From the IMG/VR virus record IMGVR_UViG_3300013104_000001, positions 223,407 through 287,406 of that record: a stretch of 64,000 nt of DNA. One strand, written 5' to 3'. Below the pieces are notes generated by a model. That model had not been told where the DNA came from, did no database searches, and saw nothing but the letters and a program-made list of their open reading frames with translations. The position numbers and the translations under genes were made by a program. Below are positions 3,989 through 60,068 of the stretch, piece by piece; the first letter of the stretch is position 1, and the number at the start of each line of letters is the position of its first letter.

Positions 3989-4028
3989 CGGCATAACGGG
4001 AGGGACTTCGGTCCCTCCCATTTATCGA
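3989..4028. terminator. Bidirectional hairpin terminator with CGGCATA on its left flank
   Basis: GGGAGGGAC-TTCG-GTCCCTCCC lies between convergent genes. Confidence 0.85.
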
Positions 4029-4032
4029 TGCA

Positions 4033-4368
4033 TCATTTTTTATTTAAGTTGTAAAGATCACGAATACTCGAGAGCATGCTATCGTTTTCATCGATGAGTT
4101 TGATTTTATCAACTATCATATCCCACTTAAAGGGATTTACGATACCATTCAATCGCATAATTAACCAATGCATGTGATACGCAACCCTTGCGTTCAATAA
4201 CACCATGCGAAAGTCACCGCGTTCTTCATACTGCGCAAGAGCAGTAGGCGGAGTATAATCAGTTGCCCGTGCTCTTAATAAATCAAGATGGTGAATTAAC
4301 ACCTTACGAAAGCCAGGGTCTTGATAGATGGCAATTGTAGGATGCACGATCTCGTTGGATACTTGCAT
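4033..4368 (-). CDS. Small conserved protein (gp70 position), possibly LysM/T4 gp53-like baseplate wedge fold
   Basis: 111 aa. The segment HWLIMRLNGIVNPF resembles the W-I-N-I-P signature of gp53/tail-X LysM proteins. Confidence 0.45.
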   Translation of the reverse strand: MQVSNEIVHPTIAIYQDPGFRKVLIHHLDLLRARATDYTPPTALAQYEERGDFRMVLLNARVAYHMHWLIMRLNGIVNPFKWDMIVDKIKLIDENDSMLSSIRDLYNLNKK

Positions 4369-4387
4369 GGAAATATACCTATACTTG

Positions 4388-4403
4388 TTTAAGCCTATAT
4401 TAT
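4388..4403 (+). promoter_or_regulatory. Putative early (virion RNAP) promoter, TTTAAGCCTATATTAT
   Basis: The same motif recurs at 15735, 23474 and 63391, each upstream of a + strand gene start. It resembles the phiKZ early TATATTAC-type consensus. Confidence 0.65.
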
Positions 4404-4436
4404 CATTGTGCAGTTAGGTTGATAAAAGGAACAGCA

Positions 4437-6536
4437 ATGAATCACATTACCGAAGCAAGTGAATTATCTCCCGATATCTTAGGCGGTATTCTTTGTTTGA
4501 ACCCTACCTTACATGGTGATAGCAGCCCACGATCTGCTATGTTTGGTGGTCACGCAGGACAAGCGGTTACCATTGAAGGTAGTACACCGCGAATGTTGAA
4601 GACCGGCATGGAGTACGTGTATGGTCGTCCAACATTTAAGATTGAAGCTCCGTGTCAGATGTTGGTCATTGGGGTTATCAATCGCTTTGCGACTAATCAC
4701 GTAGGTGCAGGCGGTATTCGTGAGAACCCCGAACGTTATGTGATCTATCAGAACGTAGAGCGCAGTAATGTCCCGACCTTTGGCATTATGTGTATTCCAA
4801 CTTACCATACGCGTAATCACGCATTAGGTTTTAAGTACAAGCCTCATGCGCGTAATATCCAGCGTCTGTATAATGAGAAAGAGTATTTCCAGAAAGGCGA
4901 TATCTTTGCAATCTCACCAAACTTAACGGAAGGTGGTGATTATAAGTACGGTCGTGAAACGAACGTTGCTTTCATGTCACTACCAGAGGTCGAGCAGGAC
5001 GGCATGGTGGTCACCGAATCGTTTGCCAAGGCGATGGCGTGTACCAAGATTGAAAACCGCATTGTACAATGGGGTGATGATTATGTGTTGTTGAACCTTT
5101 ATGGTGATGACACCACGTATAAAGCATATCCAGATATCGGTGAAAAGATTCGTGATGATGGCATGCTGTATGCCATGCGTCGAATCATACCGGGCACGGG
5201 TATTGTGAACATGACGCCAAAAGCATTGCGTATCTTCGATCCAGAGTTTGACAAACCTGTTTATGCAGAAGCAGGCGCTACCGTTATTAACGTAGCAGTG
5301 AACTCTGACCGTATGCGTACAGGTCGTGCTGAAGTTCAGTTCTATGATAAACAGACTGAACGCTATGAACGTGCTGCTCGTGAGTTCTCCAAACAACTGC
5401 GTAACCTGTATGACAATCTGTATCGTCAGTATGGTGCGGGTATGGTGCTGGAACCAGAACTCAACCGAATGATCACTGATGCGATCTCTGACACAGGTGG
5501 TATGGATCGTAAGATCAATAACCAAGGTCAGATCATGTCTGTCGATAAAGGTACCCAGGTTTATAACAAGGTACCGATTGGCGACTGGCGTGTGAAGATC
5601 ACCTTTGTTAAGCGTATCGAAGCCGGTGTACGTTTCAAGATCACTGATACCCATGGCGGTAAAGGTGTTATTGTAAATGTGATCAAGGATGAAGATGCAC
5701 CAACGGATGACTTCGGTAACCGTGCTGATGTAATCATGGATGATGTGTCGATCACCAAACGTATGAACTTAGGCAAACCAGTTGAGCAGTATATCAACGG
5801 GGCATCTGTCTATGCGACTAAGGTTGCGCGTGAGCTGGTTGCGAAGGGTGACACAGATGGTGCATGGAATCACCTGATGAGTTATTACGAAGCCGCAGCT
5901 TTTGAACAGTACGAGCTGATGCAGAATGGCATGTATAATGACAAGCCTACTCGTGACATGCATGTTGCTCATGTCTGTGCGAATGGCGTGCAGTTGTTTG
6001 CACCAACCAATCGTCGCTTCTATGGTGCTGAGCAATGTCGTCGTATCATGAAGAAGCATGACTTCCCGATCAGTCCAGTGCGGTATCGTGCACCTAATGG
6101 TGAAATGGTTCGTACGCGTGACCCGGTGATGATTGCACCAATCTACATCATCCTGCTGGAGAAGATGGGCGAGTATTGGGCGTCGTGTGCAATTCCAAAG
6201 CTCACGCACTTTGGTACACTCTCATCTCTGACGCAAGCAGACAAATACGCACTGCCATGGCGTAATACACCGACTCGTTTCGGTGAGTCTGAATTGCGAC
6301 TGTTCCTGGCGGCCTGTCGTGGTGTTTATGCTAACCGTCTACAGAGCATGGCGAACACGCCTGCAATGCAACGTGAAGCAGCATTGATGATGTTACGTCA
6401 TCAGACACCAATGAACATGGATAACGTGATTGACGAACGTAAAACACCATTGGGTCGTGCACGTCCGCTACAAATGTATAAGCACAACCAAAGCTGTCGT
6501 GGTATCGAGTTTGAAACCACTACACTTGCGAGCTAA
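4437..6536 (+). CDS. rpoB: Non-virion RNA polymerase beta-like subunit, C-terminal part (phiKZ gp71-73-like), uninterrupted
   Basis: Motifs include KITDTHGGKGVI (beta GDK..RHGxKG), KRMNLG and TRFGESE (QRFGEME). The ATG at 4437 follows an AAGGA RBS. Confidence 0.9.
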   Translation: MNHITEASELSPDILGGILCLNPTLHGDSSPRSAMFGGHAGQAVTIEGSTPRMLKTGMEYVYGRPTFKIEAPCQMLVIGVINRFATNHVGAGGIRENPERYVIYQNVERSNVPTFGIMCIPTYHTRNHALGFKYKPHARNIQRLYNEKEYFQKGDIFAISPNLTEGGDYKYGRETNVAFMSLPEVEQDGMVVTESFAKAMACTKIENRIVQWGDDYVLLNLYGDDTTYKAYPDIGEKIRDDGMLYAMRRIIPGTGIVNMTPKALRIFDPEFDKPVYAEAGATVINVAVNSDRMRTGRAEVQFYDKQTERYERAAREFSKQLRNLYDNLYRQYGAGMVLEPELNRMITDAISDTGGMDRKINNQGQIMSVDKGTQVYNKVPIGDWRVKITFVKRIEAGVRFKITDTHGGKGVIVNVIKDEDAPTDDFGNRADVIMDDVSITKRMNLGKPVEQYINGASVYATKVARELVAKGDTDGAWNHLMSYYEAAAFEQYELMQNGMYNDKPTRDMHVAHVCANGVQLFAPTNRRFYGAEQCRRIMKKHDFPISPVRYRAPNGEMVRTRDPVMIAPIYIILLEKMGEYWASCAIPKLTHFGTLSSLTQADKYALPWRNTPTRFGESELRLFLAACRGVYANRLQSMANTPAMQREAALMMLRHQTPMNMDNVIDERKTPLGRARPLQMYKHNQSCRGIEFETTTLAS

Positions 6537-28101: not shown

Positions 28102-29688
28102 ATGAGTGAAGATAAAAACGTAGTAGAGACGCACGGTGATCTGCCAAAGAACGCCGAAGTCGGCGAACGCTTCACCGTTAAAGAAGATGCGATCGTTTAC
28201 GAGTACCAAAAGGACGGTACCTGGAAAGACGTAGACATCGATGAAGTTATCGATGCTGAAAACGACCAGGCGCAGACTTCCGATGACCAGGTACACTCTG
28301 CCGATGACAATCAACAGACCGCGGATCATAACGAGTCTGGTGCAAGCGATAATGCACAGCAGGGACCGGCAAGCGATACGCCGGCTGATGAAGACAATAC
28401 TAAGGTTGACCAGCAGAACACTGCCAACGGTGGCGAACGCCCAATCGATGTGCAGAACCAAACTGACAACCAGAACCCGTCGACTGATTCTGCCAAAGCT
28501 GTAGAAACGGCAGAACAGCAGGAAGAAGCCAAACAGGCCGATCCTGATCAGGAACTGCCATCTGATGATGAGCAGCGTAATCTGGAAAGTGGCGAAACTA
28601 CTCCGCGCCAGGAATCAGCCGTTAATGAAGTTTCTGACGAGAAACAACAAGATGGCGTAGTTCCTCCAACTGCACCTGCAGCTCCGCCGGTCGAAGATCG
28701 TCCACGTGCTGAAGTCAATCCAGAAGCGCCACAGTCTACTCCTGAGGCAAAGCCGGATGAAGTTAAAGTTGCAGCTGCACAGCAGCAAGCGCTGAACGAA
28801 GACAAAGCCCGTGATCAGATCGATGAAGCCGGTGCCGATGCCACTGCTGCAACCACTGCAGAACCAACCCCGGCCGGTGAGCAGAAAGCCGAAGCTGAAG
28901 CGCAGCAACAAGCTGCTGCTGATGATGCGGACAAACCTGCAGAAGCGACTGAAACCCAGCATCCAAACTCGGGTGTAGCGGATGATGTCAATATCGGTAA
29001 ACCACGTAATGATCAAACCTACATCGGTGATCAGAACGCGGCTAACACACCGTCACCTGCCACCGTGCAACATCAAGAGAACCATACTGCCGAAGAGAAC
29101 CCGGTGGTTAGTCAGGAAGAGACTGCGGTACAAAACGCAACTGATCCTGATGCACCAACGATCATCCCGGCAGAAGCGACCTCTGAGTCAATGAACCATT
29201 CGCCAGCTAATCCTACTCAGGAAACTGTGTATGTGAAGCAGGACGAAAACGTTGATCCAGAAGTGAAAGTCATCCGTCAGCGTATTGAAGAATACATTGC
29301 ACAGATGGGTCGTAATGGATCTCACCGTCGCGATGAAGGGCCAAAGCATCAGGCGCGTCTGTATAAGACACTGCATGCTATCATGGCGCTTGAACCGATC
29401 AAGTTCAAACAAGCGATGGACTACCTGCTGGATCGTGTGTATGAAGAACGTGCTGGTGCATTCTCTGATGTGTACGTGCGCCGTTACTTCGACATGCTGT
29501 CACCACAGCATCTGCAGGGTAACCAGGTGAAAGAGTTTGACAATATCCTGTCACTCGTCGCCAATGTTGGTTACTCGAAGAACCGCAGTCGTGCTCTGCA
29601 GGATATCGATCTGCAGCGTGCTCTGAAGAACATTCAGGATGCGGGTAAGCAACAGCGTATGGCAGCGTACTTCTCTGCTCTGCGTTAA
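28102..29688 (+). CDS. Protein with a ~330-aa acidic disordered region and a helical C-terminal domain
   Basis: 528 aa with an AAGGAG RBS. The middle is D/E/Q/A/P-rich and the last ~145 aa look folded. Confidence 0.8.
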   Translation: MSEDKNVVETHGDLPKNAEVGERFTVKEDAIVYEYQKDGTWKDVDIDEVIDAENDQAQTSDDQVHSADDNQQTADHNESGASDNAQQGPASDTPADEDNTKVDQQNTANGGERPIDVQNQTDNQNPSTDSAKAVETAEQQEEAKQADPDQELPSDDEQRNLESGETTPRQESAVNEVSDEKQQDGVVPPTAPAAPPVEDRPRAEVNPEAPQSTPEAKPDEVKVAAAQQQALNEDKARDQIDEAGADATAATTAEPTPAGEQKAEAEAQQQAAADDADKPAEATETQHPNSGVADDVNIGKPRNDQTYIGDQNAANTPSPATVQHQENHTAEENPVVSQEETAVQNATDPDAPTIIPAEATSESMNHSPANPTQETVYVKQDENVDPEVKVIRQRIEEYIAQMGRNGSHRRDEGPKHQARLYKTLHAIMALEPIKFKQAMDYLLDRVYEERAGAFSDVYVRRYFDMLSPQHLQGNQVKEFDNILSLVANVGYSKNRSRALQDIDLQRALKNIQDAGKQQRMAAYFSALR

Positions 29689-29701: not shown

Positions 29702-29740
29702 CAGCATAGGGAGAGGGCAAACGCCCTCTCCTTTATGCCG
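29702..29740. terminator. Bidirectional terminator, CAGCATA-hairpin-TTATGCCG
   Basis: GGGAGAGGGC-AAAC-GCCCTCTCCT between convergent genes. Confidence 0.85.
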
Positions 29741-29759: not shown

Positions 29760-30263
29760 TTAAACTAAGCTACCATTGAACGCGACAACATCATTTCCAA
29801 TAAATGGATTATATCTCACCATCGAACCTAGCGTGTAATCGTAATAGATGAAGTCAATGCACTGGGCGCCATTGTAAGTAGTGTATGCTTTTGATGTGAA
29901 CCCATTACGGTTTAATGCAATGTAAGACGGTCGACTACTTATCGCAGTAAACCTCAGCAGGACCTGTTTTTGGTTGGTAGTGTTATCGTTAAACACGGGT
30001 AATGATGGATGCGCGTGTCTAGCGATAGTACACATCCATGAATCCCAAGTGAACCACTCTTTGTACGGAGTACCGTACATATTGTTGGATGCATCTAAAG
30101 TAGTATTGACATACGTACCTGCATACTTCTGCATTGCAGTTCTGCCGTCCGCTACCTTCGTGTATTTAGCCGCATTGTTATTGAGCCATGTCAAGAATTC
30201 GGCATAGCTCATCTTAGCCCCAATGCTGGGTTGATGTTTACCACCGATCAACATTTCTAACAT
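29760..30263 (-). CDS. LCCL-like domain protein (MLEML family), paralog B
   Basis: MYGT....FTWDSWMCTIARHA ... SYIALNRNGFTS fits the LCCL pattern vyGt..Yt.dS.iC.AAvH ... Y.gs.rNGi.S. Confidence 0.65.
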   Translation of the reverse strand: MLEMLIGGKHQPSIGAKMSYAEFLTWLNNNAAKYTKVADGRTAMQKYAGTYVNTTLDASNNMYGTPYKEWFTWDSWMCTIARHAHPSLPVFNDNTTNQKQVLLRFTAISSRPSYIALNRNGFTSKAYTTYNGAQCIDFIYYDYTLGSMVRYNPFIGNDVVAFNGSLV

Positions 30264-30275
30264 GATTATTTTCCC

Positions 30276-30785
30276 TTAAACAAGCGTACCATCAAATACA
30301 ACCGGAGTACTTGCAATGGACGGATTCCAACGCATCATGATACCTGTGGCATTATCATGATAGATAAAGTCAATTAACTGTCGACCGCCGAATGTAGAAT
30401 ATGAAATACTGTTATATCCATTTCGGTTGATGCCAAGGAAAGATGGGCGAGAAATATACGTCCCAAGTTTTATTAAGCAAAACTGTTTATTAGCCAGCAT
30501 GTAATCGAAGACTGATTGAATAGGGCAAGAGTGTCTAATAAACCTGGCGAAAGGTGAGTCGTGTGTAAACCAGTTGTTATACGGAGTACCCCACATGTTC
30601 CCGCCATCAGCAGTCATCGCTATACTGACATACGCATTCTGGTAATTAGATGAAGACGTGGTGATGGCAGGACTCGTTGTCAAAGCAGTGTATTTAGCTT
30701 TGTTATTGTTAAGCCAAATAACGAAATCAGAGTACGACATCCCCGTAACTTTCTTCTTACCTCCTGCCAATAACATTTCTAACAT
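30276..30785 (-). CDS. LCCL-like domain protein (MLEML family), paralog A
   Basis: MWGTPYNNWFTHDSPFARFIRHS ... SFLGINRNGYNS. An obvious full-length paralog of 29760-30263. Confidence 0.65.
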   Translation of the reverse strand: MLEMLLAGGKKKVTGMSYSDFVIWLNNNKAKYTALTTSPAITTSSSNYQNAYVSIAMTADGGNMWGTPYNNWFTHDSPFARFIRHSCPIQSVFDYMLANKQFCLIKLGTYISRPSFLGINRNGYNSISYSTFGGRQLIDFIYHDNATGIMMRWNPSIASTPVVFDGTLV

Positions 30786-30835
30786 ACATATACCTCGGTA
30801 CGAATTTCGTTTTTGACGGTGTCTATATCATTTCT

Positions 30836-30846
30836 CCCCCCCCCCC
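30836..30846 (-). repeat. Homopolymer G11 (C11 on +) abutting a putative promoter of the LCCL genes
   Basis: The minus strand reads G11-AGAAATGATATAGACAC. Confidence 0.8.
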
Positions 30847-30871
30847 TGCAAACCGCATGCCAACTTTTAGA

Positions 30872-30901
30872 CGGCATAAACGGGACAGCAACTGCCGCCC
30901 C
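30872..30901 (-). terminator. Hairpin followed by TTTATGCCG on the minus strand
   Basis: The minus strand reads GGGGCGGCA-GT-TGCTGTCCC-GTTTATGCCG. Confidence 0.7.
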
Positions 30902-30931
30902 AGATCCTGGTATCGAGTTGTAACTGGCGCG

Positions 30932-31867
30932 TTATAGTATCGTTTTCTGATCTAAAGTATTCTGATCAGGGAAGCCACGGCCTACTCCCCAAATAATACG
31001 AACTGCTCCGTTACCGCCAGCTCCCAGCCAGCTTGTCCCGTCACTACGATACTGAGTGGCTCCGCCGCCTCCAAATCCACCGCCCGAGATCACCGCAGGA
31101 TAACCAGCACCTGATCCTGGATTGTCCTTAATCCTACCCATAGGTCGAATTCCTCCGCCCCCACGTCCTGTGTAGGTATTGACAAGGTTTGCTGTTACCA
31201 TGGATACCGTTCCGCCATAACCAGCGCCAGTATCATTCGGCATCTTCTGAGCCGCTCCATAGGTCGCACCAACACTTCCATCACCTAAATAGCCACCTGC
31301 CCCTCCTCCGCCAACTGCACGTGCGAGAAGCGTTCCTGTGGCCCCTATGCCACCATTACCGCCACCGATGAGCGGTGCTGCTAAATCATGGACAAGGGTA
31401 TCTGCTGCTCCTAGTACTCCGGCAACGGCTGTGAGTAAATAATCAAGGTGCGATCCAACCTGACCCCCAAGCTGTACTTTGACGTTAATCAAAGAACTCA
31501 GTGACAGATCTTCACCTCCTCCTGTAGCTCGGAGTATGTAGACTCCATTGTGCAGTATTCCAGAACTCAGTCCTTTGGCCCCTGCATATACTCCTTTCGT
31601 ACCCGCGGTGAGTCCATCGCCACCTTTCCCAACAATCACAGAAAGATGCTCACCTGGTCTGACCGGTATCCAGTTTCGATACCGTAATGCGCCTCCTGTA
31701 CCACCCTGATGCTGTAACAATGTGTTACTGGCCGATTGACCTCCACCTACCGCGACCGCACTCATCCGGTTTACTCCTTGCGGAACAACAAGATCTTGAG
31801 TACCTGCAGTGGTAAAGGTTTGTTGACCAACAGCATGGGGAGCTGTGACTAACAATAACTCAAGCAT
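30932..31867 (-). CDS. Glycine-rich virion/adhesin-like protein (MLELL family)
   Basis: 311 aa with VP.GV..MSAVAVGGG, many GGGGAGG motifs and a C-terminal GGNGAVRIIWG, typical of phage glycine-rich tail domains. Confidence 0.7.
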   Translation of the reverse strand: MLELLLVTAPHAVGQQTFTTAGTQDLVVPQGVNRMSAVAVGGGQSASNTLLQHQGGTGGALRYRNWIPVRPGEHLSVIVGKGGDGLTAGTKGVYAGAKGLSSGILHNGVYILRATGGGEDLSLSSLINVKVQLGGQVGSHLDYLLTAVAGVLGAADTLVHDLAAPLIGGGNGGIGATGTLLARAVGGGGAGGYLGDGSVGATYGAAQKMPNDTGAGYGGTVSMVTANLVNTYTGRGGGGIRPMGRIKDNPGSGAGYPAVISGGGFGGGGATQYRSDGTSWLGAGGNGAVRIIWGVGRGFPDQNTLDQKTIL

Positions 31868-31979: not shown

Positions 31980-33701
31980 TCAAGCCGCAGCCATAAAATC
32001 GATAACGATATTTTTCTCTTTCATGAAGTCTTCAAGGAGCGTTACTGTATCTGGCGCTTTATAAAGTATACGTGCTAACTCACCCGCATTGTTCATACCG
32101 CCTGCCGCCAAGTTCACAGCGACCTGTCGGTACTCAGTGTCATCCAATCCTTCTATCTTCGTCATCTCGATCCACGTAGTCTGTTTACCTACGTTCATGA
32201 TAACGGTACCAGTTGGATATGCCCCTTCTACGTCAATGTCGTTTGTACCAATTCGGACATAAGACTTAACTTTAGGGAGTTCTTTAAACATCGCTTTGCC
32301 GTTAAGCGCAACAAGCTCTGTTGGCAACATAACGATCCAGCCACCCAAGCCCTGGATATGATCATCCAGCTCAGTACGCATCTGGTCAGAGGTCGTGCCC
32401 CAGATATAACCTTCTTTCATTACATCGTAATGCATCGCTTCTGCAATACGTGTTGGCTGTGAAATAAAGTTACGGTAATCAGATACACCACAGAAGACAG
32501 GCACTGCTGCTGATAGATCAGAGGTCTTCTCATCCATCATTTCTACTACAATGCAGTCGAAGATGTTATACATCACATATTCGTACTTGTAGTTAGCTTG
32601 CATGAACTCATGCCATTCTGCACCGTGGTAACCTTCAGCTTCACTGAACTTCATCTTCGTTACACCGAGGACCTTCTCAGCGATCGAATCTAACTTATAG
32701 TTCAGTTCTTTACCACCACCGATACGCAGGTAGTAGTAAGCACACATGGAGTCAGCCCAACGGAAAGAAGCAGGCGCATTGACATACGGCCATTTCTCAT
32801 AGTTAGCTAATGAGGTTTTCGTGACGTTCTTACCGTCATCTTTGACCTTGTGTGTTTTGCCTTCATAATAGAAGACATTGCGATACTCAGGCGGAACAGA
32901 AGGATCACAGATCACGTCAGCAATGTTAATGCCAGCGTTAGCCAGAGTTTGTGCCACAACTTTATAGTCGAACTCTAATACGTTCCAGCCCGTAATAAAG
33001 TCAGGCTTCCATTCATGCGCACGCTTAAAGGTTTCGACAAAGCCATCAGCTGGGTTATCAACTAATACAAACTCAGGTGATTTGATCCCACGCTTCTCAG
33101 CATATTCGCCCAGGTACTTAAACCAGGCTTCGGTAAGCTTCTGATGAATACGTTCGTCAGACTCACCCCCGAAGTAACGACGATCAATAAACGTGAAGGT
33201 ACGATCTTTAAAGGTCAATGACCCCATGATCGCTTCACCCTTACGTGACTCATCATTCATTTCGGTTTCGATATCGAACACGCTCACCGTGTAAGGTGTC
33301 ATGTTGCCAGGGAACTTTGCTTCGTACATCGCTTTGACAATCGAGGTAGGTTCGATGTCAGCACCGTATACATAAGGTGAGCGGTTAACACGACGCAGGG
33401 GCAAGTCCGTTGCTCCCTTGCCCAGCATCTTAGAGATATGGTTAGCCAGATCCCATTGCGGACAGGTGAACTTCTGCAGCTTACTGACTTCTTCGTAGTC
33501 TTTCTTATCGTTGTGATCACGGTAAGCCGGCTTGGTTAAATAATAGTCACGCTTCATATCTTTCAAGATACGCGTATGAGGTGTCGAGTTTCCATTCTCG
33601 TCGATGATATTCTCTTTTACGAACAGAATATCAGACTTGCCTCTTAAGGACAGGGCATATGTCGCAAACTTGCATTCAAGTCTAACGTTACTTTCACTCA
33701 T
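31980..33701 (-). CDS. Split B-family DNA polymerase, 3'-5' exonuclease plus motif-A subunit (phiKZ gp82-like)
   Basis: ExoI FDIET, ExoII GWNVLEFD, ExoIII YNIFD and polB motif A DVEGAYPT are present. Motifs B and C are not. Confidence 0.85.
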   Translation of the reverse strand: MSESNVRLECKFATYALSLRGKSDILFVKENIIDENGNSTPHTRILKDMKRDYYLTKPAYRDHNDKKDYEEVSKLQKFTCPQWDLANHISKMLGKGATDLPLRRVNRSPYVYGADIEPTSIVKAMYEAKFPGNMTPYTVSVFDIETEMNDESRKGEAIMGSLTFKDRTFTFIDRRYFGGESDERIHQKLTEAWFKYLGEYAEKRGIKSPEFVLVDNPADGFVETFKRAHEWKPDFITGWNVLEFDYKVVAQTLANAGINIADVICDPSVPPEYRNVFYYEGKTHKVKDDGKNVTKTSLANYEKWPYVNAPASFRWADSMCAYYYLRIGGGKELNYKLDSIAEKVLGVTKMKFSEAEGYHGAEWHEFMQANYKYEYVMYNIFDCIVVEMMDEKTSDLSAAVPVFCGVSDYRNFISQPTRIAEAMHYDVMKEGYIWGTTSDQMRTELDDHIQGLGGWIVMLPTELVALNGKAMFKELPKVKSYVRIGTNDIDVEGAYPTGTVIMNVGKQTTWIEMTKIEGLDDTEYRQVAVNLAAGGMNNAGELARILYKAPDTVTLLEDFMKEKNIVIDFMAAA

Positions 33702-51081: not shown

Positions 51082-53397
51082 ATGACCAGCATGAATACAT
51101 TGGGTCCAGCACAGTCAACGTTGCTTGCTGATGAATCAGACGGTAAACAAAAAAAGAAAGTTACCGACAACGCCAAAACCGAATCTACCGAGATGTCAAT
51201 TGAGATCTTGAAGAAAACCAGTAAAGAGAAACCTGAGACTACCGAGGGCGACGAACCTGCTTTCGGGTTTGGTAGTGAAGGCTACGCAATGCTGGACAGT
51301 ATGTCGTTTGACTTAACCGAACACAGCGACAAATATATCCAAGAGCTTCTGGATAAAATTACCACCATCGTGATTGAAGCCAACGGCGATCTTAATAAGA
51401 AAGACCTGGAGAAGATCCGTAACGTCGGTCTGGAAGATTACCGTGATCTGGCACAAGCTGCTATGAAGCGCATCATGCAGTTTATCCGTTGGTCTATTAA
51501 CCAAGGCAAAGAAGGGATCAAGCGTGTCGCTGATCGTCTGGGCCGGTTAGGTATGAAGTCGATGTATGTTGAGCGTAAACTCGATATCTCAACTGACAGT
51601 TCATTGCCTACGGATAAGTTTGTATTAGCACGTTCTTTCCCATTGTTGATGCTTGCTGATAAACCGCCAGCGAATGCAATGGATGTGCTGAACTCGTTGA
51701 ATAAAACCAAGTATCTATTCACCTTGGTCCACAACGATTATCAGAACTACCAGAACCTGTTTAAACAAGCTGTTGCAACTGGCTCACGTTCTGAAACGCT
51801 GGAGATGATCAATAACTATTTGAATTCACTCTCAGGTCGTTTAGGCGCTAAGCCCAATCCGCAGTTTAATAACAACCTGAGCTTTAACTATCTGCCAGGT
51901 GGTTATCGTCTGGTGTTCTCAACGGGCGATTCATTTGCCGATTGCTCTGCGATACTTGTGCGCGTACCTGGTCAGTATAGTGTTGCGCCGTCTGCACCGC
52001 GTCCTGATAAGTCGAGCCTGGTTCGCTTGATGGCTGAGATCAAACAGTTCCTGCGCACCATCAATGAGATCTATGGAAAAGTCTCTAGTCGTTTGGAGTC
52101 TGACTTCCGTAATATCTCCCGCAGTGCTGAACGCGATATTAAGACGTTTGACTCGTCTGTTGATATCCGTACTGCATCGACAACCGTTGAATGGTTTGTT
52201 GAACAGCAGTCACGTATTTTCACTCGTACGATGATGTTGTCATGTTCGGTATTGAATGCGTGCCTGGACTACTGTATCGCTGCTATTGGCGGTAAGCCTG
52301 CTGCCGGTATGGAAGACTTCGATGACAGCTACACTATCGAAGCGCTCGGTGAGCAACTGGATTCCATTGATGATCGTCTACGTAGTATTGAAGTAGATGC
52401 ATCGGTTATTCAATCTATCGGGGACAACAAAGACCTGGTTGACTGTGATAACGATTATGTAATCCGTCAGCTGATTGAGACCAATGCAACCGAACCATTC
52501 ACGCCGGGTTACGGTATTGATAACCTGCGTAACATGTGGCATTTGGTACGAGCCGGTAAAACCACTGAAGTGATTACCCGTCGTTTAGGTGCGATCATGG
52601 ATGCGACATCCGATCTGGATACTTCGGTAAAATTCATGAAGACGCTCTTCACTGAAGGTCGTTTATTTGAATGCCGGACAACGGATGATTACATTGCTGA
52701 CTTTACTGCCGGTCATCCACTGTGTTCATTCCTGCACCGTGCTGAGCGTGAATCATTAGGTTCAGCGCAGATTGCTAACTACCTCGAGCAGAACGTTGAT
52801 AAGGTCAGTGCAACAGTCACGACACTTATGGTCTTTGCTGAAACACTGAGCGATACCGTTGTTGATGGTGAGTTTACCGTTAGTCGGTTGAAGGAGTTTA
52901 TGTTGAACGCTCCTCAATTACCATTTACATCAGCGATGCTTTGCGGCGGGTATGAGATCAAGGAACGTTCAGAAAAGCTTGCAGGTTTAGTTGTACGCAG
53001 CTATACACTGGAACACGTCAAAGACTTGTCACCAATTGAAAGCTTTGATGGTCATGACAGTGAAATGAATGGGTTCATTGATCAGCAGGTTAAACGGTAC
53101 GAAGCAGAGTACGCTCGCTTAGCACGTATCGTTGAATTGCTGCAAGTGGGCACAGGTCATCTGCGTTATATCACTGCAGCGGTTGTCGATAACCTTAACG
53201 CCGGTGGTTTGAAAGGTGAAGGGGATAACTGGGTGTATTCAGCAATGGAGTACTTGACTGTTGCGACTCGCCAGTACCGTTGGATGTATCGCATGACAAT
53301 CCAGCTCGCTATGTATAACCGACTGACAATTGAGGCTGCGAATCAGTATATGGCAGGAGGGTTCTATGGAAACGACGAGCAACAAGAGTCTGTATAA
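51082..53397 (+). CDS. Large internal head protein, apparently two modules joined by an internal processing site
   Basis: About 771 aa. FGSEG and VGLED occur near the N-terminus and AGMED internally at 52303-52317. Confidence 0.7.
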   Translation: MTSMNTLGPAQSTLLADESDGKQKKKVTDNAKTESTEMSIEILKKTSKEKPETTEGDEPAFGFGSEGYAMLDSMSFDLTEHSDKYIQELLDKITTIVIEANGDLNKKDLEKIRNVGLEDYRDLAQAAMKRIMQFIRWSINQGKEGIKRVADRLGRLGMKSMYVERKLDISTDSSLPTDKFVLARSFPLLMLADKPPANAMDVLNSLNKTKYLFTLVHNDYQNYQNLFKQAVATGSRSETLEMINNYLNSLSGRLGAKPNPQFNNNLSFNYLPGGYRLVFSTGDSFADCSAILVRVPGQYSVAPSAPRPDKSSLVRLMAEIKQFLRTINEIYGKVSSRLESDFRNISRSAERDIKTFDSSVDIRTASTTVEWFVEQQSRIFTRTMMLSCSVLNACLDYCIAAIGGKPAAGMEDFDDSYTIEALGEQLDSIDDRLRSIEVDASVIQSIGDNKDLVDCDNDYVIRQLIETNATEPFTPGYGIDNLRNMWHLVRAGKTTEVITRRLGAIMDATSDLDTSVKFMKTLFTEGRLFECRTTDDYIADFTAGHPLCSFLHRAERESLGSAQIANYLEQNVDKVSATVTTLMVFAETLSDTVVDGEFTVSRLKEFMLNAPQLPFTSAMLCGGYEIKERSEKLAGLVVRSYTLEHVKDLSPIESFDGHDSEMNGFIDQQVKRYEAEYARLARIVELLQVGTGHLRYITAAVVDNLNAGGLKGEGDNWVYSAMEYLTVATRQYRWMYRMTIQLAMYNRLTIEAANQYMAGGFYGNDEQQESV

Positions 53398-53713
53398 TGC
53401 TGCCCGTATTCCGGTGTTATACGAGTATCCCTTTGACTTTACACCTCACGCTAGACTGTTAGCTAACGAAAACGTTAATGAGCAGCCTTCTCAGGCGTTT
53501 GCTGAGATGTTTGCAGCCATGACAGGGGATGCGTGGTCGCTCACGCCTAAGACACCTTACACGCTGTATGGTGCGAAGGTTCTTTATATTGGCACCACGA
53601 AGAAAGAGTTCCCAACCAGTAAACGGTATCCGTATACACTGGTGTTGCAACTAAGTAGTCGTTATAACTTCAGAAAGTTGTACTTAAGTTTCAAAGTGCT
53701 TTCAAGTAGCTGA
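53366..53713 (+). CDS. Small hypothetical (possibly virion) protein
   Basis: GGAGG RBS before the ATG at 53366. 115 aa. Confidence 0.65.
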   Translation: METTSNKSLYNAARIPVLYEYPFDFTPHARLLANENVNEQPSQAFAEMFAAMTGDAWSLTPKTPYTLYGAKVLYIGTTKKEFPTSKRYPYTLVLQLSSRYNFRKLYLSFKVLSSS

Positions 53714-57874: not shown

Positions 57875-58402
57875 TTAAACTTCAATAGCCAATGGCTGAC
57901 CGTCTTCGGTAGTCAACCGCATGCCGTCTTCCGTCAGAAGTGTTCCTTCCTGCGGCGCGGCACCTGGATTTACGATAACAGTAAAACTGCCTTCGTATAC
58001 CAGACAGCTATCTTTAAATGTGATGAGCTGCGTAATGGAACCGTCTGGGCCAACTGCACTGAGTGCAACATCATTGATTTCAGCTGGAGTAATCTGAAGA
58101 CCATGGCGTGCATTAATAGCCGGTAATAGATCCGCGGTTGTTGCTGGACTTGCGACAACAAGAATTGGAATATAATTGAGAAACAGTAGCTCACCTTTCA
58201 GTCGGTCCAGGTTAACTATGTTACTCCCCACGTACCCTTTGCCCACAACGGCCGTGACTGGAATATCGGTATCACGTTTACCGGATCCTGTTACGGGTGA
58301 AGGGACACCAAAGTTAACTTGATCAATTCGGAACGCAAGTACGTTATCCTGATTGATCTGATCAACAATGATCTGGGCCGATGGCTGATTCAGGATGGTC
58401 AT
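57875..58402 (-). CDS. Virion structural protein (Ig-like, phiKZ-type decoration/fibre adaptor)
   Basis: 175 aa with Y.GS......R..L...LLP.IN.R.GL.I...EI and a C-terminal LLTEDG..LTTEDG repeat. Confidence 0.6.
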   Translation of the reverse strand: MTILNQPSAQIIVDQINQDNVLAFRIDQVNFGVPSPVTGSGKRDTDIPVTAVVGKGYVGSNIVNLDRLKGELLFLNYIPILVVASPATTADLLPAINARHGLQITPAEINDVALSAVGPDGSITQLITFKDSCLVYEGSFTVIVNPGAAPQEGTLLTEDGMRLTTEDGQPLAIEV

Positions 58403-58517: not shown

Positions 58518-60068
58518 ATGCCCATCGTGACCAGGCCAACACCAGAACAACATAAGTCGATTATCCGACCAGTAGTAATTCAAGTTGTCAATCAGTTACT
58601 CCCTATCATGCAGTTAGACCGAGAGGCACCTGATGATTTGATCTTCAATGGGTTTGCTGAGATCGCCATGCTTTCTAATACTGAGATTGGTATTAACCGT
58701 AATCCCGAGTCTCCGATTCGTGCACCCGGTCCAACTCAGATCATGGTGAATATCGAAGAAAGGCCCACCTCAGTGACTTCACCTGAAGTTTCGGTGATGT
58801 ATCCTGAGAACCGTTTCATTATGCATGATGCACGCTTAGGGATCGGTATTCGTCCTGTGCGTCGTCCTGTTGAAATCACCATCAGTTTCAATAAACGTTT
58901 CCGTTCCAAGGCAGCAGCTGATCGCTGGCACTCAAACATGGAACAACTCATGGCGCGTTATGTACAGGACTATATCCACACCCTGGATTACCATTACAAC
59001 ATCCCTGATGAGATGATTGTCATGTTACATGAGTTCTGGAAGCTACGTGAATCTCGTGCACCTTATAATGAGAACTTCGGTCAGTGGTTATCGAGCTGCA
59101 TGGCGCCGTACCAAACCGTTACCACTAACCAGTCTGGTAGCGCTAACGAACTCTCATTTGCAGAAGGTCTGGATAACGTTCAGGGTAACTGGGATTTTGA
59201 TGTGGTGCCCTATCCGGTACGTGAGAATACCCGTGGTAACTGGCAGGTCAGTTTCGATTATAAGTTTGAGTTCGGTAAGGTTATTGATCTGGTAATGAAC
59301 TACCCGATTATTATCCATAACCAGCTGCTTGCCCGTGAATTGATTCCAACGCCACGTAATCCACGCTACCGTAATAAGGTATACCAGAAGAACGCCATGA
59401 TGTATCGGGCTGAGTCGAACATGCAGGAAGTTCAGCCAACCGATTATCAGCTGCGTGATTATCTGTGTTTCCCAGAGTGGGATGATTGGATCCCTGAATA
59501 CATTCCTCCTTATCAAGCGGTTCAGTATACGGCACAATTGGAACTCGATCAAAATGATCCCAAGGCACTCTTTAATCTTAAAGAGATTGGTGACTACGAG
59601 TTTACCCCAATTGCGATTGCTTATCTGAGCTATGTGCGTAATCGCATGTTTGCCAATACCCGTTCTGTGATTCAGGTTAAGGTATACGAAGAAGAGATCC
59701 TTATTGACTCCGATCAGTTATCGGTCGATGAGCAACTCAACGTAACTACGCTGTTTACACCGAATGATCGTAAGTCGTATCACTTGATGGTGACTATCGA
59801 TAAAGATCTGGCGAAGCTTGATGAACATACGGTTGCGGAATTGAAAGAGGATGGGTGGTTTACGGAGAATGTGCTTGAGGTGATCTACCCTCAATACAAA
59901 GGTACACCTGTCTGGCCGACACCGAATGACCGGGGTGAGATCTCTAACCTTGCGTGGGATCGTTTTGTTGCGGCACTGTATCCGACCAGTCAGTGGTATC
60001 GTAAACCTGACATCGCACAGATGACCATTGGGCAGTTTACCATTTTTGCTAAGAAGAGAGACATTTAA
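58518..60068 (+). CDS. Conserved virion structural protein (gp98 position)
   Basis: 516 aa with a GAGGA RBS. Assignment is by synteny. Confidence 0.65.
   Translation: MPIVTRPTPEQHKSIIRPVVIQVVNQLLPIMQLDREAPDDLIFNGFAEIAMLSNTEIGINRNPESPIRAPGPTQIMVNIEERPTSVTSPEVSVMYPENRFIMHDARLGIGIRPVRRPVEITISFNKRFRSKAAADRWHSNMEQLMARYVQDYIHTLDYHYNIPDEMIVMLHEFWKLRESRAPYNENFGQWLSSCMAPYQTVTTNQSGSANELSFAEGLDNVQGNWDFDVVPYPVRENTRGNWQVSFDYKFEFGKVIDLVMNYPIIIHNQLLARELIPTPRNPRYRNKVYQKNAMMYRAESNMQEVQPTDYQLRDYLCFPEWDDWIPEYIPPYQAVQYTAQLELDQNDPKALFNLKEIGDYEFTPIAIAYLSYVRNRMFANTRSVIQVKVYEEEILIDSDQLSVDEQLNVTTLFTPNDRKSYHLMVTIDKDLAKLDEHTVAELKEDGWFTENVLEVIYPQYKGTPVWPTPNDRGEISNLAWDRFVAALYPTSQWYRKPDIAQMTIGQFTIFAKKRDI

Follow-up and report, generated by a model that had tools for sequence, protein, structure and literature searches.

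The LCCL domain (Pfam PF03815; cochlin, CRISPLD1/2, Limulus factor C; solved structure 1JBI) is a fold of about 100 residues in which a central α-helix is wrapped by two β-sheets, with four conserved cysteines forming two disulfides and a conserved histidine within the motif YxxxSxxCxAAVHxGVI (PMC10892792). It is known from animal innate immunity, where LCCL proteins, CRISPLD2 and cochlin among them, are reported to bind lipid A or bacterial surfaces (PMC10892792, PMC3683062). On the phage side, the phiKZ gp83 family (EL gp155, 201phi2-1 gp452 and gp456, PhiPA3 gp080-083) comprises multiple paralogues with a short N-terminal head (MFELLL, MLELML or MIDLML) followed by a flexible linker. Modular phage receptor-binding proteins attach to the particle by a constant N-terminal part, as in tail-fibre and tail-spike adaptor domains, while the variable C-terminal parts bind the host. 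In T4, a capsid targeting sequence of roughly 10 residues is shared by the otherwise unrelated internal proteins IPI, IPII and IPIII, directs them into the prohead core and is cut off after a Glu by the prohead protease. Finally, the DUF7941 (PF25613) baseplate-filament proteins of chimalliviruses are proposed host-recognition accessories held on by peptide-in-groove contacts, with docking of a linker to the N-terminal domain reported in preprint 10.64898/2026.04.21.720040.

The locus studied here lies within a window of 64,000 nucleotides (positions 223,407 to 287,406 of IMG/VR record IMGVR_UViG_3300013104_000001), which is the last 64 kb of a 287-kb phiKZ-like jumbo phage related to the Erwinia Agricanvirus phages. 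The original prediction, made from sequence alone, described three adjacent minus-strand genes with a common MLE[ML]L start but different payloads, two of them AT-rich paralogues with LCCL-like motifs and one glycine-rich. This observation was confirmed and turned out to be part of a larger set. All three ORFs are present on the minus strand: D at 29760-30263 (167 aa, MLEMLIGG), E at 30276-30785 (169 aa, MLEMLLAGG) and F at 30932-31867 (311 aa, MLELLLV). D and E are 43% identical (BLASTP E 7e-45) and both carry M(Y/W)GTPY..W(F)T.DS....(A/I)RH and SRPS(Y/F)....NRNG..S. Their base composition, 42.5% GC for D and 40.8% for E against a gene mean of 46.5 +/- 2.7%, puts them at the 8th and 2nd percentile, whereas the 52.2% GC of F fits its glycine codons.

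The three genes are not the whole set, since a search of the genome for the shared start found five further head-tagged genes outside the window. In all, eight of about 335 genes begin M[LIF]E[LM][LMF][LMIF], against 0.013 expected from composition (Poisson P about 2e-20), and the motif does not occur once internally in 88,429 residues. The payloads that follow are of five kinds: LCCL-like (D and E), Gly_rich_2 (F and one more), LamG, phiKZ-gp83-like and possibly Kelch-like. A common promoter or leader was rejected as the source of the shared start, because the upstream regions have in common only a Shine-Dalgarno sequence and synonymous codons vary, which indicates selection on the peptide rather than on the DNA.

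Gene D (29760..30263, minus strand; phrog_6409 at E 1e-69) consists of the head MLEMLI (residues 1-6; codons ATG TTA GAA ATG TTG ATC at 30246..30263, minus strand), a Gly/Lys-rich linker (residues 7-17), a helix (20-29), an LCCL-like core (33-138; 29850..30167, minus strand) and a C-terminal β extension. The core includes the central helix carrying S75-C78-A81-H83 and the R119-N120-G121-x-x-S124 loop, and G64, H83, R119, N120, G121 and S124 are at least 90% conserved across 125 family members. Gene E (30276..30785, minus strand) lies 12 bp upstream of D, and its head plus linker, MLEMLLAGGKKKV, is followed by an LCCL-like domain. The first 13 residues of E match 11 of 13 with protein C (137962-138669 of G000, the handle for this genome), which has an unrelated payload. 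Gene F (30932..31867, minus strand) has the head MLELLL followed by a glycine-rich domain which passes the gathering threshold of Pfam Gly_rich_2 (PF21722; 29.7 bits against a cut-off of 24.3, E 8e-7, profile positions 1-225 of 226). A paralogue of F with the head MFELFMGG lies at G000 100922-101704, and homologues with MFE/MLE heads occur in PVP-SE1 (gp19) and in Certrevirus F1M1E. Upstream of F on the same strand is a DNA polymerase gene (31980..33701, minus strand; phrog_3011), which marks the syntenic spot where phiKZ carries the head-tagged gp83 in the order gp80-81-82(pol)-83-84-85-86; the PhiPA3 gene order was also compared. At the other end, a perfect 9-bp GC-rich hairpin (GGAGAGGGC-GTTT-GCCCTCTCC, 29710..29731) was read directly from the sequence between D and the convergent gene 28102-29688, although a consensus scan did not list it. 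It is T-rich on the + strand side and is therefore a likely terminator closing the cassette.

The LCCL assignment holds at the level of the predicted fold. A first structure prediction of D with only 9 close homologues was poor (pLDDT 61.5, with the motif regions below 50), whereas an AlphaFold model built on a 125-sequence alignment was of high confidence (pLDDT 93.4, pTM 0.87), except that pLDDT averaged 57 over residues 1-10, so that the head is free or disordered on its own in the monomer model. LCCL domains were the best matches of this model in four libraries: AFDB Swiss-Prot (cochlin, CRISPLD1/2, vitrin, Limulus factor C, DCBLD1/2), AFDB clusters, the PDB by Foldseek, and an exhaustive VIA-align search of 48,161 chains, in which model residues 33..138 matched the cochlin LCCL domain 1JBI at Z 9.9 and rmsd 1.9 Å over 90 of 100 residues and the next unrelated chain scored 3.3. 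Look-alikes from the ESM Atlas, with scores around 0.7, were noise. The histidine motif of D, F71-x3-S75-x2-C78-x-I-A81-R-H83, has S/C/A/H spacing identical to that of the LCCL consensus S-x2-C-x-A-A-V-H (PMC10892792), and D-S is in the family consensus, although this was matched by eye against the published motif and not by a residue-level structural alignment. In contrast, sequence profiles did not reach LCCL: the Pfam model gave no hit for D or E at E<=1 and none in the whole genome at E<=10, only 1 of 125 family members hit, at E 0.095, and a profile of the family found no PDB sequence at E<=10. No cysteine column is conserved in the 125-member alignment, and E lacks the Cys of the SxxC motif.

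The head persists in other phages where payloads are 25-30% identical or unrelated. It recurs in phiKZ gp83 and gp298 (MFELLL), PhiPA3 gp080-083, 201phi2-1 gp452 and gp456 (MIDL variant), PhiEaH1, a metagenomic contig (L018), and the rV5-like phages PVP-SE1, F1M1E and POP15; a tblastn search with P0113, meant to find the member of Cronobacter phage PBES 02, did not find it. At least 38 of 115 stand-alone LCCL-like representatives start M-[LIF]-E-x-[LM]-[LM], while other sub-groups carry other recurrent short heads, such as M[LF]P[FL]P..NT and MSRL.RR, and one podovirus member lies inside a P22-like structural module. In other phages the LCCL-like domain is fused to DUF7941 (six representative proteins), to a GP38 adhesin domain, to LamG and to C1q, and head-tagged genes sit next to tail-fibre genes in PhiEaH1 and L018.

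Evidence for a virion location is only indirect and comes from homologues with other payloads. The records of 201phi2-1 gp452 and gp456 read 'identified as virion protein by mass spectrometry', phiKZ gp083 and gp298 are annotated as virion structural proteins, and all four are encoded outside the main structural modules. However, the RAY orthologues of this cassette (gp282-284) were not among 44 proteins detected by mass spectrometry of crude lysates, although the neighbours gp281 and gp287 were (PMC6690015); the RAY and Deimos-Minion data both derive from crude lysates. The recent cryo-EM atlas of phiKZ, the phiKZ capsid paper and the Goslar preprint neither place nor mention gp83-type proteins. 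CB7_55, a virion protein encoded outside the structural module, proved to be homologous to the FN3-headed PhiEaH1 gp086 and not to an MLE-headed protein.

D, E and F belong to a dispersed set of at least eight head-tagged accessory proteins of this phage. Each has an almost invariant N-terminal hexapeptide, M-[L/F]-E-[L/M]-[L/M/F]-hydrophobic, a short flexible linker rich in Gly, Lys, Pro and Ser, and one of several unrelated β-rich, lectin-type payload domains. The hexapeptide most likely works as an address or docking peptide that inserts into a hydrophobic site of a virion component, and in that way small, monomeric, interchangeable surface-binding modules would be tethered to the particle, where they would help it recognize the host envelope (LPS, EPS or other glycans). 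Of this model, our analysis establishes the architecture, the fold, the selection on the head and the fusion partners of the payloads, while the docking step, its acceptor and site on the virion, and ligand binding by the phage LCCL-like domain are inferred, the latter from fold and by analogy with animal LCCL proteins. The original interpretation, that a short shared N-terminal peptide docks interchangeable receptor- or LPS-binding modules onto the virion, is thus partly supported: its LCCL call at fold level and its modular architecture stand, but docking and binding of LPS or cell surfaces remain inferences. Six residues make a very small interface, the disulfide cysteines that define LCCL are missing, and 'structural head protein' in the phiKZ RefSeq note for gp083 fits a head location better than a fibre location. 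We regard this explanation as about as likely as not, although it is better supported than any alternative considered.

The head could act in other ways. First, it could be a capsid-targeting signal like that of T4, with the tagged proteins carried in or on the head as packaged, ejected or decoration proteins rather than on the tail or baseplate. The RefSeq note for gp083, the position of the cassette among homologues of phiKZ gp84-86, of which gp85 and gp86 belong to the inner vertex-binding complex, and the T4 precedent favor this possibility. However, MLE does not fit the S/A/G-x-E cleavage motif of the phiKZ head protease, the payloads are lectin-type folds which in other phages are fused to baseplate filaments, a GP38 adhesin domain and C1q- and fibre-like proteins, phiKZ gp298 is noted only as 'structural protein', head-tagged genes flank tail-fibre genes in PhiEaH1 and L018, and the phiKZ capsid structure does not include gp83; we consider it unlikely. 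Second, and less likely still, the tagged proteins could be soluble or released factors, for example proteins that bind host surface debris or play a part in superinfection, the conserved start then serving expression, stability or another intracellular purpose. The lack of RAY gp282-284 in lysates, the location of the genes among replication and nucleotide-metabolism genes (DNA polymerase, thymidine kinase and tRNA regions) and the AT-richness of D and E, as in accessory genes, would agree with this, whereas the virion annotation of four head-tagged homologues, the amino-acid-level conservation of a head that never occurs internally, and the payload fusions to virion fibre modules argue against it. 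Finally, our own idea that the head mimics the inter-protomer linker of DUF7941 proteins (consensus I-D-L-x-E-L-I-x-D-P, or P-x-[LF]-x-D-[LIV]-[YW]) and docks on a free DUF7941 N-terminal domain, so that tagged modules cap or decorate the baseplate filament cloud, is disfavored, because, although the linker resembles the hydrophobic-hydrophobic-acidic-hydrophobic-hydrophobic head pattern, the LCCL-like domain is found fused to DUF7941, and this genome encodes five DUF7941 proteins (including an N-terminal-domain-only and a C-terminal-domain-only form inside the window), PVP-SE1, F1M1E and POP15 have head-tagged proteins but no DUF7941 while Goslar has 10 DUF7941 genes and no E-type head, the single complex prediction (0.00, reported as 'no answer') weighing neither way.

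A broader reading, which we offer only tentatively, is that a six-residue address peptide (M-hydrophobic-E-hydrophobic-hydrophobic-hydrophobic) shared by large myoviruses of two families, phiKZ-like chimalliviruses and rV5-like Vequintavirinae, is enough to load unrelated small binding modules onto the virion, one of them a disulfide-free LCCL fold. This would be a general plug-in system for accessory host recognition, of which we found no description in the searchable literature. The analysis names a predicted fold for a large unannotated phage family of 303 representative clusters which carries no Pfam family and is 'unknown function' in PHROGs, and it takes the LCCL fold into bacteriophages, on the opposite side of the host-microbe contest from cochlin, CRISPLD2 and factor C. 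A hexapeptide start appears to mark virion accessory proteins wherever they are encoded, a testable rule which would help annotate the many 'hypothetical' virion proteins of phiKZ-like phages, would explain why some structural proteins are encoded among replication genes, and suggests how such phages swap host-recognition modules. If the tag really addresses cargo to the particle, it would also be a compact handle for studying or labelling jumbo-phage virions.

Compared with the DUF7941 filament proteins, which carry the same kinds of payload, D, E and F have no DUF7941 module. The T4 capsid targeting sequence is similar in being a very short N-terminal peptide shared by otherwise unrelated proteins, but no cleavage motif or processing is known here, and the payloads look like external binding modules. 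With the anchors of receptor-binding proteins, including the T2/S16 gp38 adhesins docked on gp37, the set shares a constant N-terminal part, several alternative modules per genome and glycine-rich adhesin payloads; the known anchors, however, are folded domains of roughly 50-150 residues, usually in trimers, whereas here the constant part is six residues plus a linker on small and probably monomeric domains of unrelated folds, and the genes are scattered outside the tail module. D, E and F fit the gp83-type start, M-[LIF]-[ED]-[LM]-[LM]-hydrophobic followed by a flexible linker, and share the syntenic position beside the DNA polymerase, but they show no similarity to gp83 or to proteins B and C, the true gp83-type members of this genome, beyond the first 13 residues, and lack the gp83-type payload (GPG..L..G...GYFGEV...W(L)KF, with or without a Kelch-like propeller). 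The LCCL-like domain of D, in turn, shares with the animal LCCL domain its predicted fold, the spacing of the histidine helix (S-x2-C-x2-A-x-H), a YG(T) motif and an (R)NG-x-x-S motif, and like LCCL it occurs next to LamG, C1q and other adhesive modules, yet it differs in its missing cysteines, in three extra residues between YGT and DS, in an extra N-terminal helix and the C-terminal β extension, and in being made in the cytoplasm by a phage, without a signal peptide.

The 64-kb window forms the last part of a 287,406-bp virus record with direct terminal repeats, and its DNA polymerase region is 76-79% identical to the Erwinia Agricanvirus jumbo phages AH06, Ea35-70, RAY and Rebecca, so that it belongs to a phiKZ-like jumbo phage (chimallivirus). 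The same three-gene cassette exists in those phages, as gp282, gp283 and gp284 in RAY and gp284-286 in Rebecca, whereas AH06 has only one small paralogue plus the glycine-rich gene; all of these are annotated as hypothetical.

The observation behind the original prediction, three adjacent genes with a common start but different payloads, proved correct. Gene D (29760-30263, 167 aa) begins MLEMLIGG, gene E (30276-30785, 169 aa) begins MLEMLLAGG and gene F (30932-31867, 311 aa) begins MLELLLV, and they run co-directionally downstream of the DNA polymerase gene (31980-33701). The cassette ends at a perfect 9-bp GC hairpin at 29710-29731, facing a convergent gene. At 28102-29688, on the plus strand, lies a 528-aa protein whose first roughly 370 residues are acidic, of low complexity and rich in Q, A, E, D and P (AT skew 0.30); by synteny and length it is the homologue of RAY gp281, one of the most readily detected proteins in RAY lysate mass spectrometry, and it occupies the position of phiKZ gp81 ("virion structural protein"). 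D and E are 43% identical and both belong to phrog_6409 ("unknown function"), while F passes the Pfam model Gly_rich_2. D and E were also said to be AT-rich, and with 42.5% and 40.8% GC they lie at the 8th and 2nd percentile of the genome's genes, respectively; F is GC-rich because of its glycine codons.

A scan of all ORFs showed that the shared start is a genome-wide feature, with five more genes outside the window, for which we give coordinates on the whole-genome record (G000). On the plus strand these are 102367-103083 (MLEMMMAS, with a Pfam Laminin_G_3 payload), 100922-101704 (MFELFMGG, Gly_rich_2) and 58552-59499 (MFELLMLKK, phrog_9022 with a weak Kelch_3 hit), and on the minus strand 137170-137856 (MLELLMVG) and 137962-138669 (MLEMLFVGGKKK; protein C), both with phiKZ-gp83-like payloads. 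In total, eight of about 335 genes begin M[LIF]E[LM][LMF][LMIF], where composition predicts 0.013 (P about 2e-20), and the motif never occurs internally in 88,429 residues. The upstream DNA shares only a ribosome-binding site and synonymous codons differ between heads, and selection therefore acts on the peptide. E and the gp83-like protein C share 11 of their first 13 residues although their payloads are unrelated. A 174-aa ORF at G000 179992-180516 (positions 3993-4517 of locus L014) begins with the head-like start MLEKLLAETPPGG but has no PHROG or Pfam hit; it is a possible ninth member and was not counted. An ORF at 2079-2495 of the window, on the plus strand, begins MMDMLMGE but matches only the C-terminal part (359-490 of 510) of phrog_3141, and this start is probably an internal Met of a longer gene rather than the head of a tagged protein.

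The head recurs in other phages. PhiPA3 gp080-083 begin MFELLLGA, MMESILGT, MLELMLSLG and MFELLLSSG, with the gp082 start lying upstream of the annotated one, 201phi2-1 gp456 and gp452 begin MIDLMLSL and MIDLLMTTGG, and phiKZ gp083 and gp298 begin MFELLL. PhiEaH1 has a four-gene tandem cassette beside thymidylate kinase, with MLEMVMGGKKK (Gly-rich), MIEALLMGRRK, MQELLLAGKK (gp83-like) and MLEAILLGKK (LamG), and two more tagged genes beside its tail-fibre gene. A 143-kb metagenomic chimallivirus contig (L018) has MLEALLISGGG, MNEILTMS, (V)SIEALLFG (LamG) and (V)IEALLMKGRR (LCCL-like) downstream of two DUF7941 genes and a 1200-aa fibre-like gene. Outside chimalliviruses, the head occurs in the rV5-like Vequintavirinae, in PVP-SE1 gp19 (MFEMMLATS, Gly-rich) and gp179, in two tandem Gly-rich genes of Certrevirus F1M1E and in POP15_047 (MLEILMAD, gp83-like). 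The 100-aa PVP-SE1 gp179 (MFEMLLGG) is directly followed by about 2.2 kb without any annotated feature (PVP-SE1 116552-118792; locus L032, 4553-6793), so that the gene may be truncated or the region under-annotated. Goslar has none of the E-type heads. Several public annotations give wrong starts for head-tagged genes, namely Rebecca gp285, PhiPA3 gp082, 201phi2-1 gp452 and PhiEaH1 gp199, gp197 and gp085 (in the phage loci compared, L001 3389-3931, L011 6001-6672, L012 5899-6651, L025 2374-3207 and 3920-4750, and L028 3659-4936), and in each case the conserved M-L/I-E/D-L start lies inside or upstream of the annotated CDS. The gp83-like payload also occurs behind a different constant N-terminal module, an FN3-like domain of about 85 residues (M..L.W.........IYR), in PhiEaH1 gp083, 084, 086 and 087 (L028), at L018 5858-7810 and at L012 10736-11701. 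These genes are interleaved with the MLE-headed paralogues next to the tail-fibre gene, and the virion protein CB7_55, verified by mass spectrometry, is a homologue of this type.

No sequence method linked D or E to Pfam LCCL, the domain suggested in the original prediction. A profile search found 303 representative clusters of the D/E family, most of them stand-alone proteins of 155-180 aa, and with a 125-sequence alignment AlphaFold gave a confident model (pLDDT 93.4, pTM 0.87) in which only residues 1-14 were uncertain. Every structure library searched with this model returned LCCL domains first. In AFDB Swiss-Prot these were cochlin 27-122, CRISPLD1/2, vitrin, Limulus factor C 324-423 and DCBLD1/2, at E 2e-4 to 1e-3 and rmsd 3.0-3.7 Å over about 110 residues; in AFDB clusters nearly all of the top 30 are "LCCL domain-containing protein"; and Foldseek against the PDB returned 1JBI and the LCCL-like Rxt3 chains. 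VIA-align matched residues 33-138 of the model to 1JBI at Z 9.9 and rmsd 1.9 Å over 90 of 100 residues, with Rxt3 at 7.8 and 6.5 and the next chain at 3.3 among 48,161 chains. The published LCCL signature YxxxSxxCxAAVHxGVI (PMC10892792) is mirrored in D as F71-x3-S75-x2-C78-x2-A81-x-H83, and H83, G64 and R119-N120-G121-x2-S124 are at least 90% conserved across the family, although the four LCCL cysteines are not conserved. We therefore regard the predicted fold as LCCL-like, probably a distant and disulfide-free relative, and not as a member of Pfam LCCL. A literature search found no paper linking LCCL to phages.

The modules to which the LCCL-like domain is attached elsewhere vary. Six longer representatives carry an N-terminal DUF7941 module followed by the LCCL-like domain, one has DUF7941, then a GP38 tail-fibre adhesin domain and then the LCCL-like domain, one has an MLE head, then LamG and then the LCCL-like domain, and one has a C1q domain. 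DUF7941 was recently described as a chimallivirus-specific module that forms long filaments anchored at the peripheral baseplate and carries carbohydrate-binding domains (preprint 10.64898/2026.04.21.720040). The window itself has two truncated DUF7941 genes, one with the N-terminal domain only (57875-58402, minus strand, 175 aa), ending in a repeated LLTEDG...LTTEDGQPLAIE tail, and one with the C-terminal domain only (53366-53713, plus strand, 115 aa), which could act as end-pieces of the baseplate filament system; the RAY homologue of the first is annotated as a putative virion structural protein. In a P22-like podovirus contig, the LCCL-like gene, with the different head MSRLARR, sits inside the structural module next to the gp10-type gene. 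Other sub-families carry other recurrent short heads: one sub-group (among family proteins P0037-P0132) starts M[LF]P[FL]P[IK](L/I)(F/S)NT, or more loosely M[LF]P[FL]P..NT, and its gene at locus L007 lies in a phage contig full of small early-type genes, while others start MSR[LV].RR or MTMQAHILRAAG. This pattern fits lineage-specific anchoring peptides.

Evidence for a virion location comes from relatives and not from D, E or F themselves. The 201phi2-1 record states that gp452 and gp456 were "identified as virion protein by mass spectrometry", and phiKZ gp083 and gp298 are annotated as virion structural proteins, with the notes "structural head protein" and "structural protein", respectively. 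However, the RAY orthologues of the cassette were not detected in crude lysates, and recent cryo-EM work on phiKZ and Goslar does not place gp83-type proteins.

The best-supported reading is that the hexapeptide plus flexible linker is an address or docking peptide that tethers small interchangeable binding modules to the particle, be it at the head, the neck or the baseplate, with D and E presenting an LCCL-type surface-binding fold and F a glycine-rich module. Of this reading, the architecture, the selection on the peptide, the modelled fold and the fusions are shown, and virion location is supported only indirectly, whereas docking, the acceptor and the ligand are inferred. The original interpretation is thus supported in part: the LCCL inference is right at fold level, and the idea of a shared head with different payloads is strongly supported and much broader than first proposed, while docking on the virion and LPS binding remain hypotheses, although readily testable ones.

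A head-targeting signal of the T4 capsid-targeting kind remains a serious rival, because of the phiKZ gp083 note and the head-gene neighbourhood. A non-virion role for the tagged proteins is less likely. Finally, our own proposal that the head mimics the DUF7941 inter-protomer linker (IDLxELIxDP) and docks on a DUF7941 N-terminal domain is disfavoured, since three Vequintavirinae have heads but no DUF7941 and Goslar has ten DUF7941 genes but no E-type head (a prediction of the complex gave no answer).

We found no description of this arrangement in the literature that could be searched, but both of its elements have established counterparts. The first is the modular receptor-binding protein, here with a hexapeptide head shared by unrelated payloads, and the second is the LCCL fold, here predicted in a phage protein family in which the four LCCL cysteines are not conserved.
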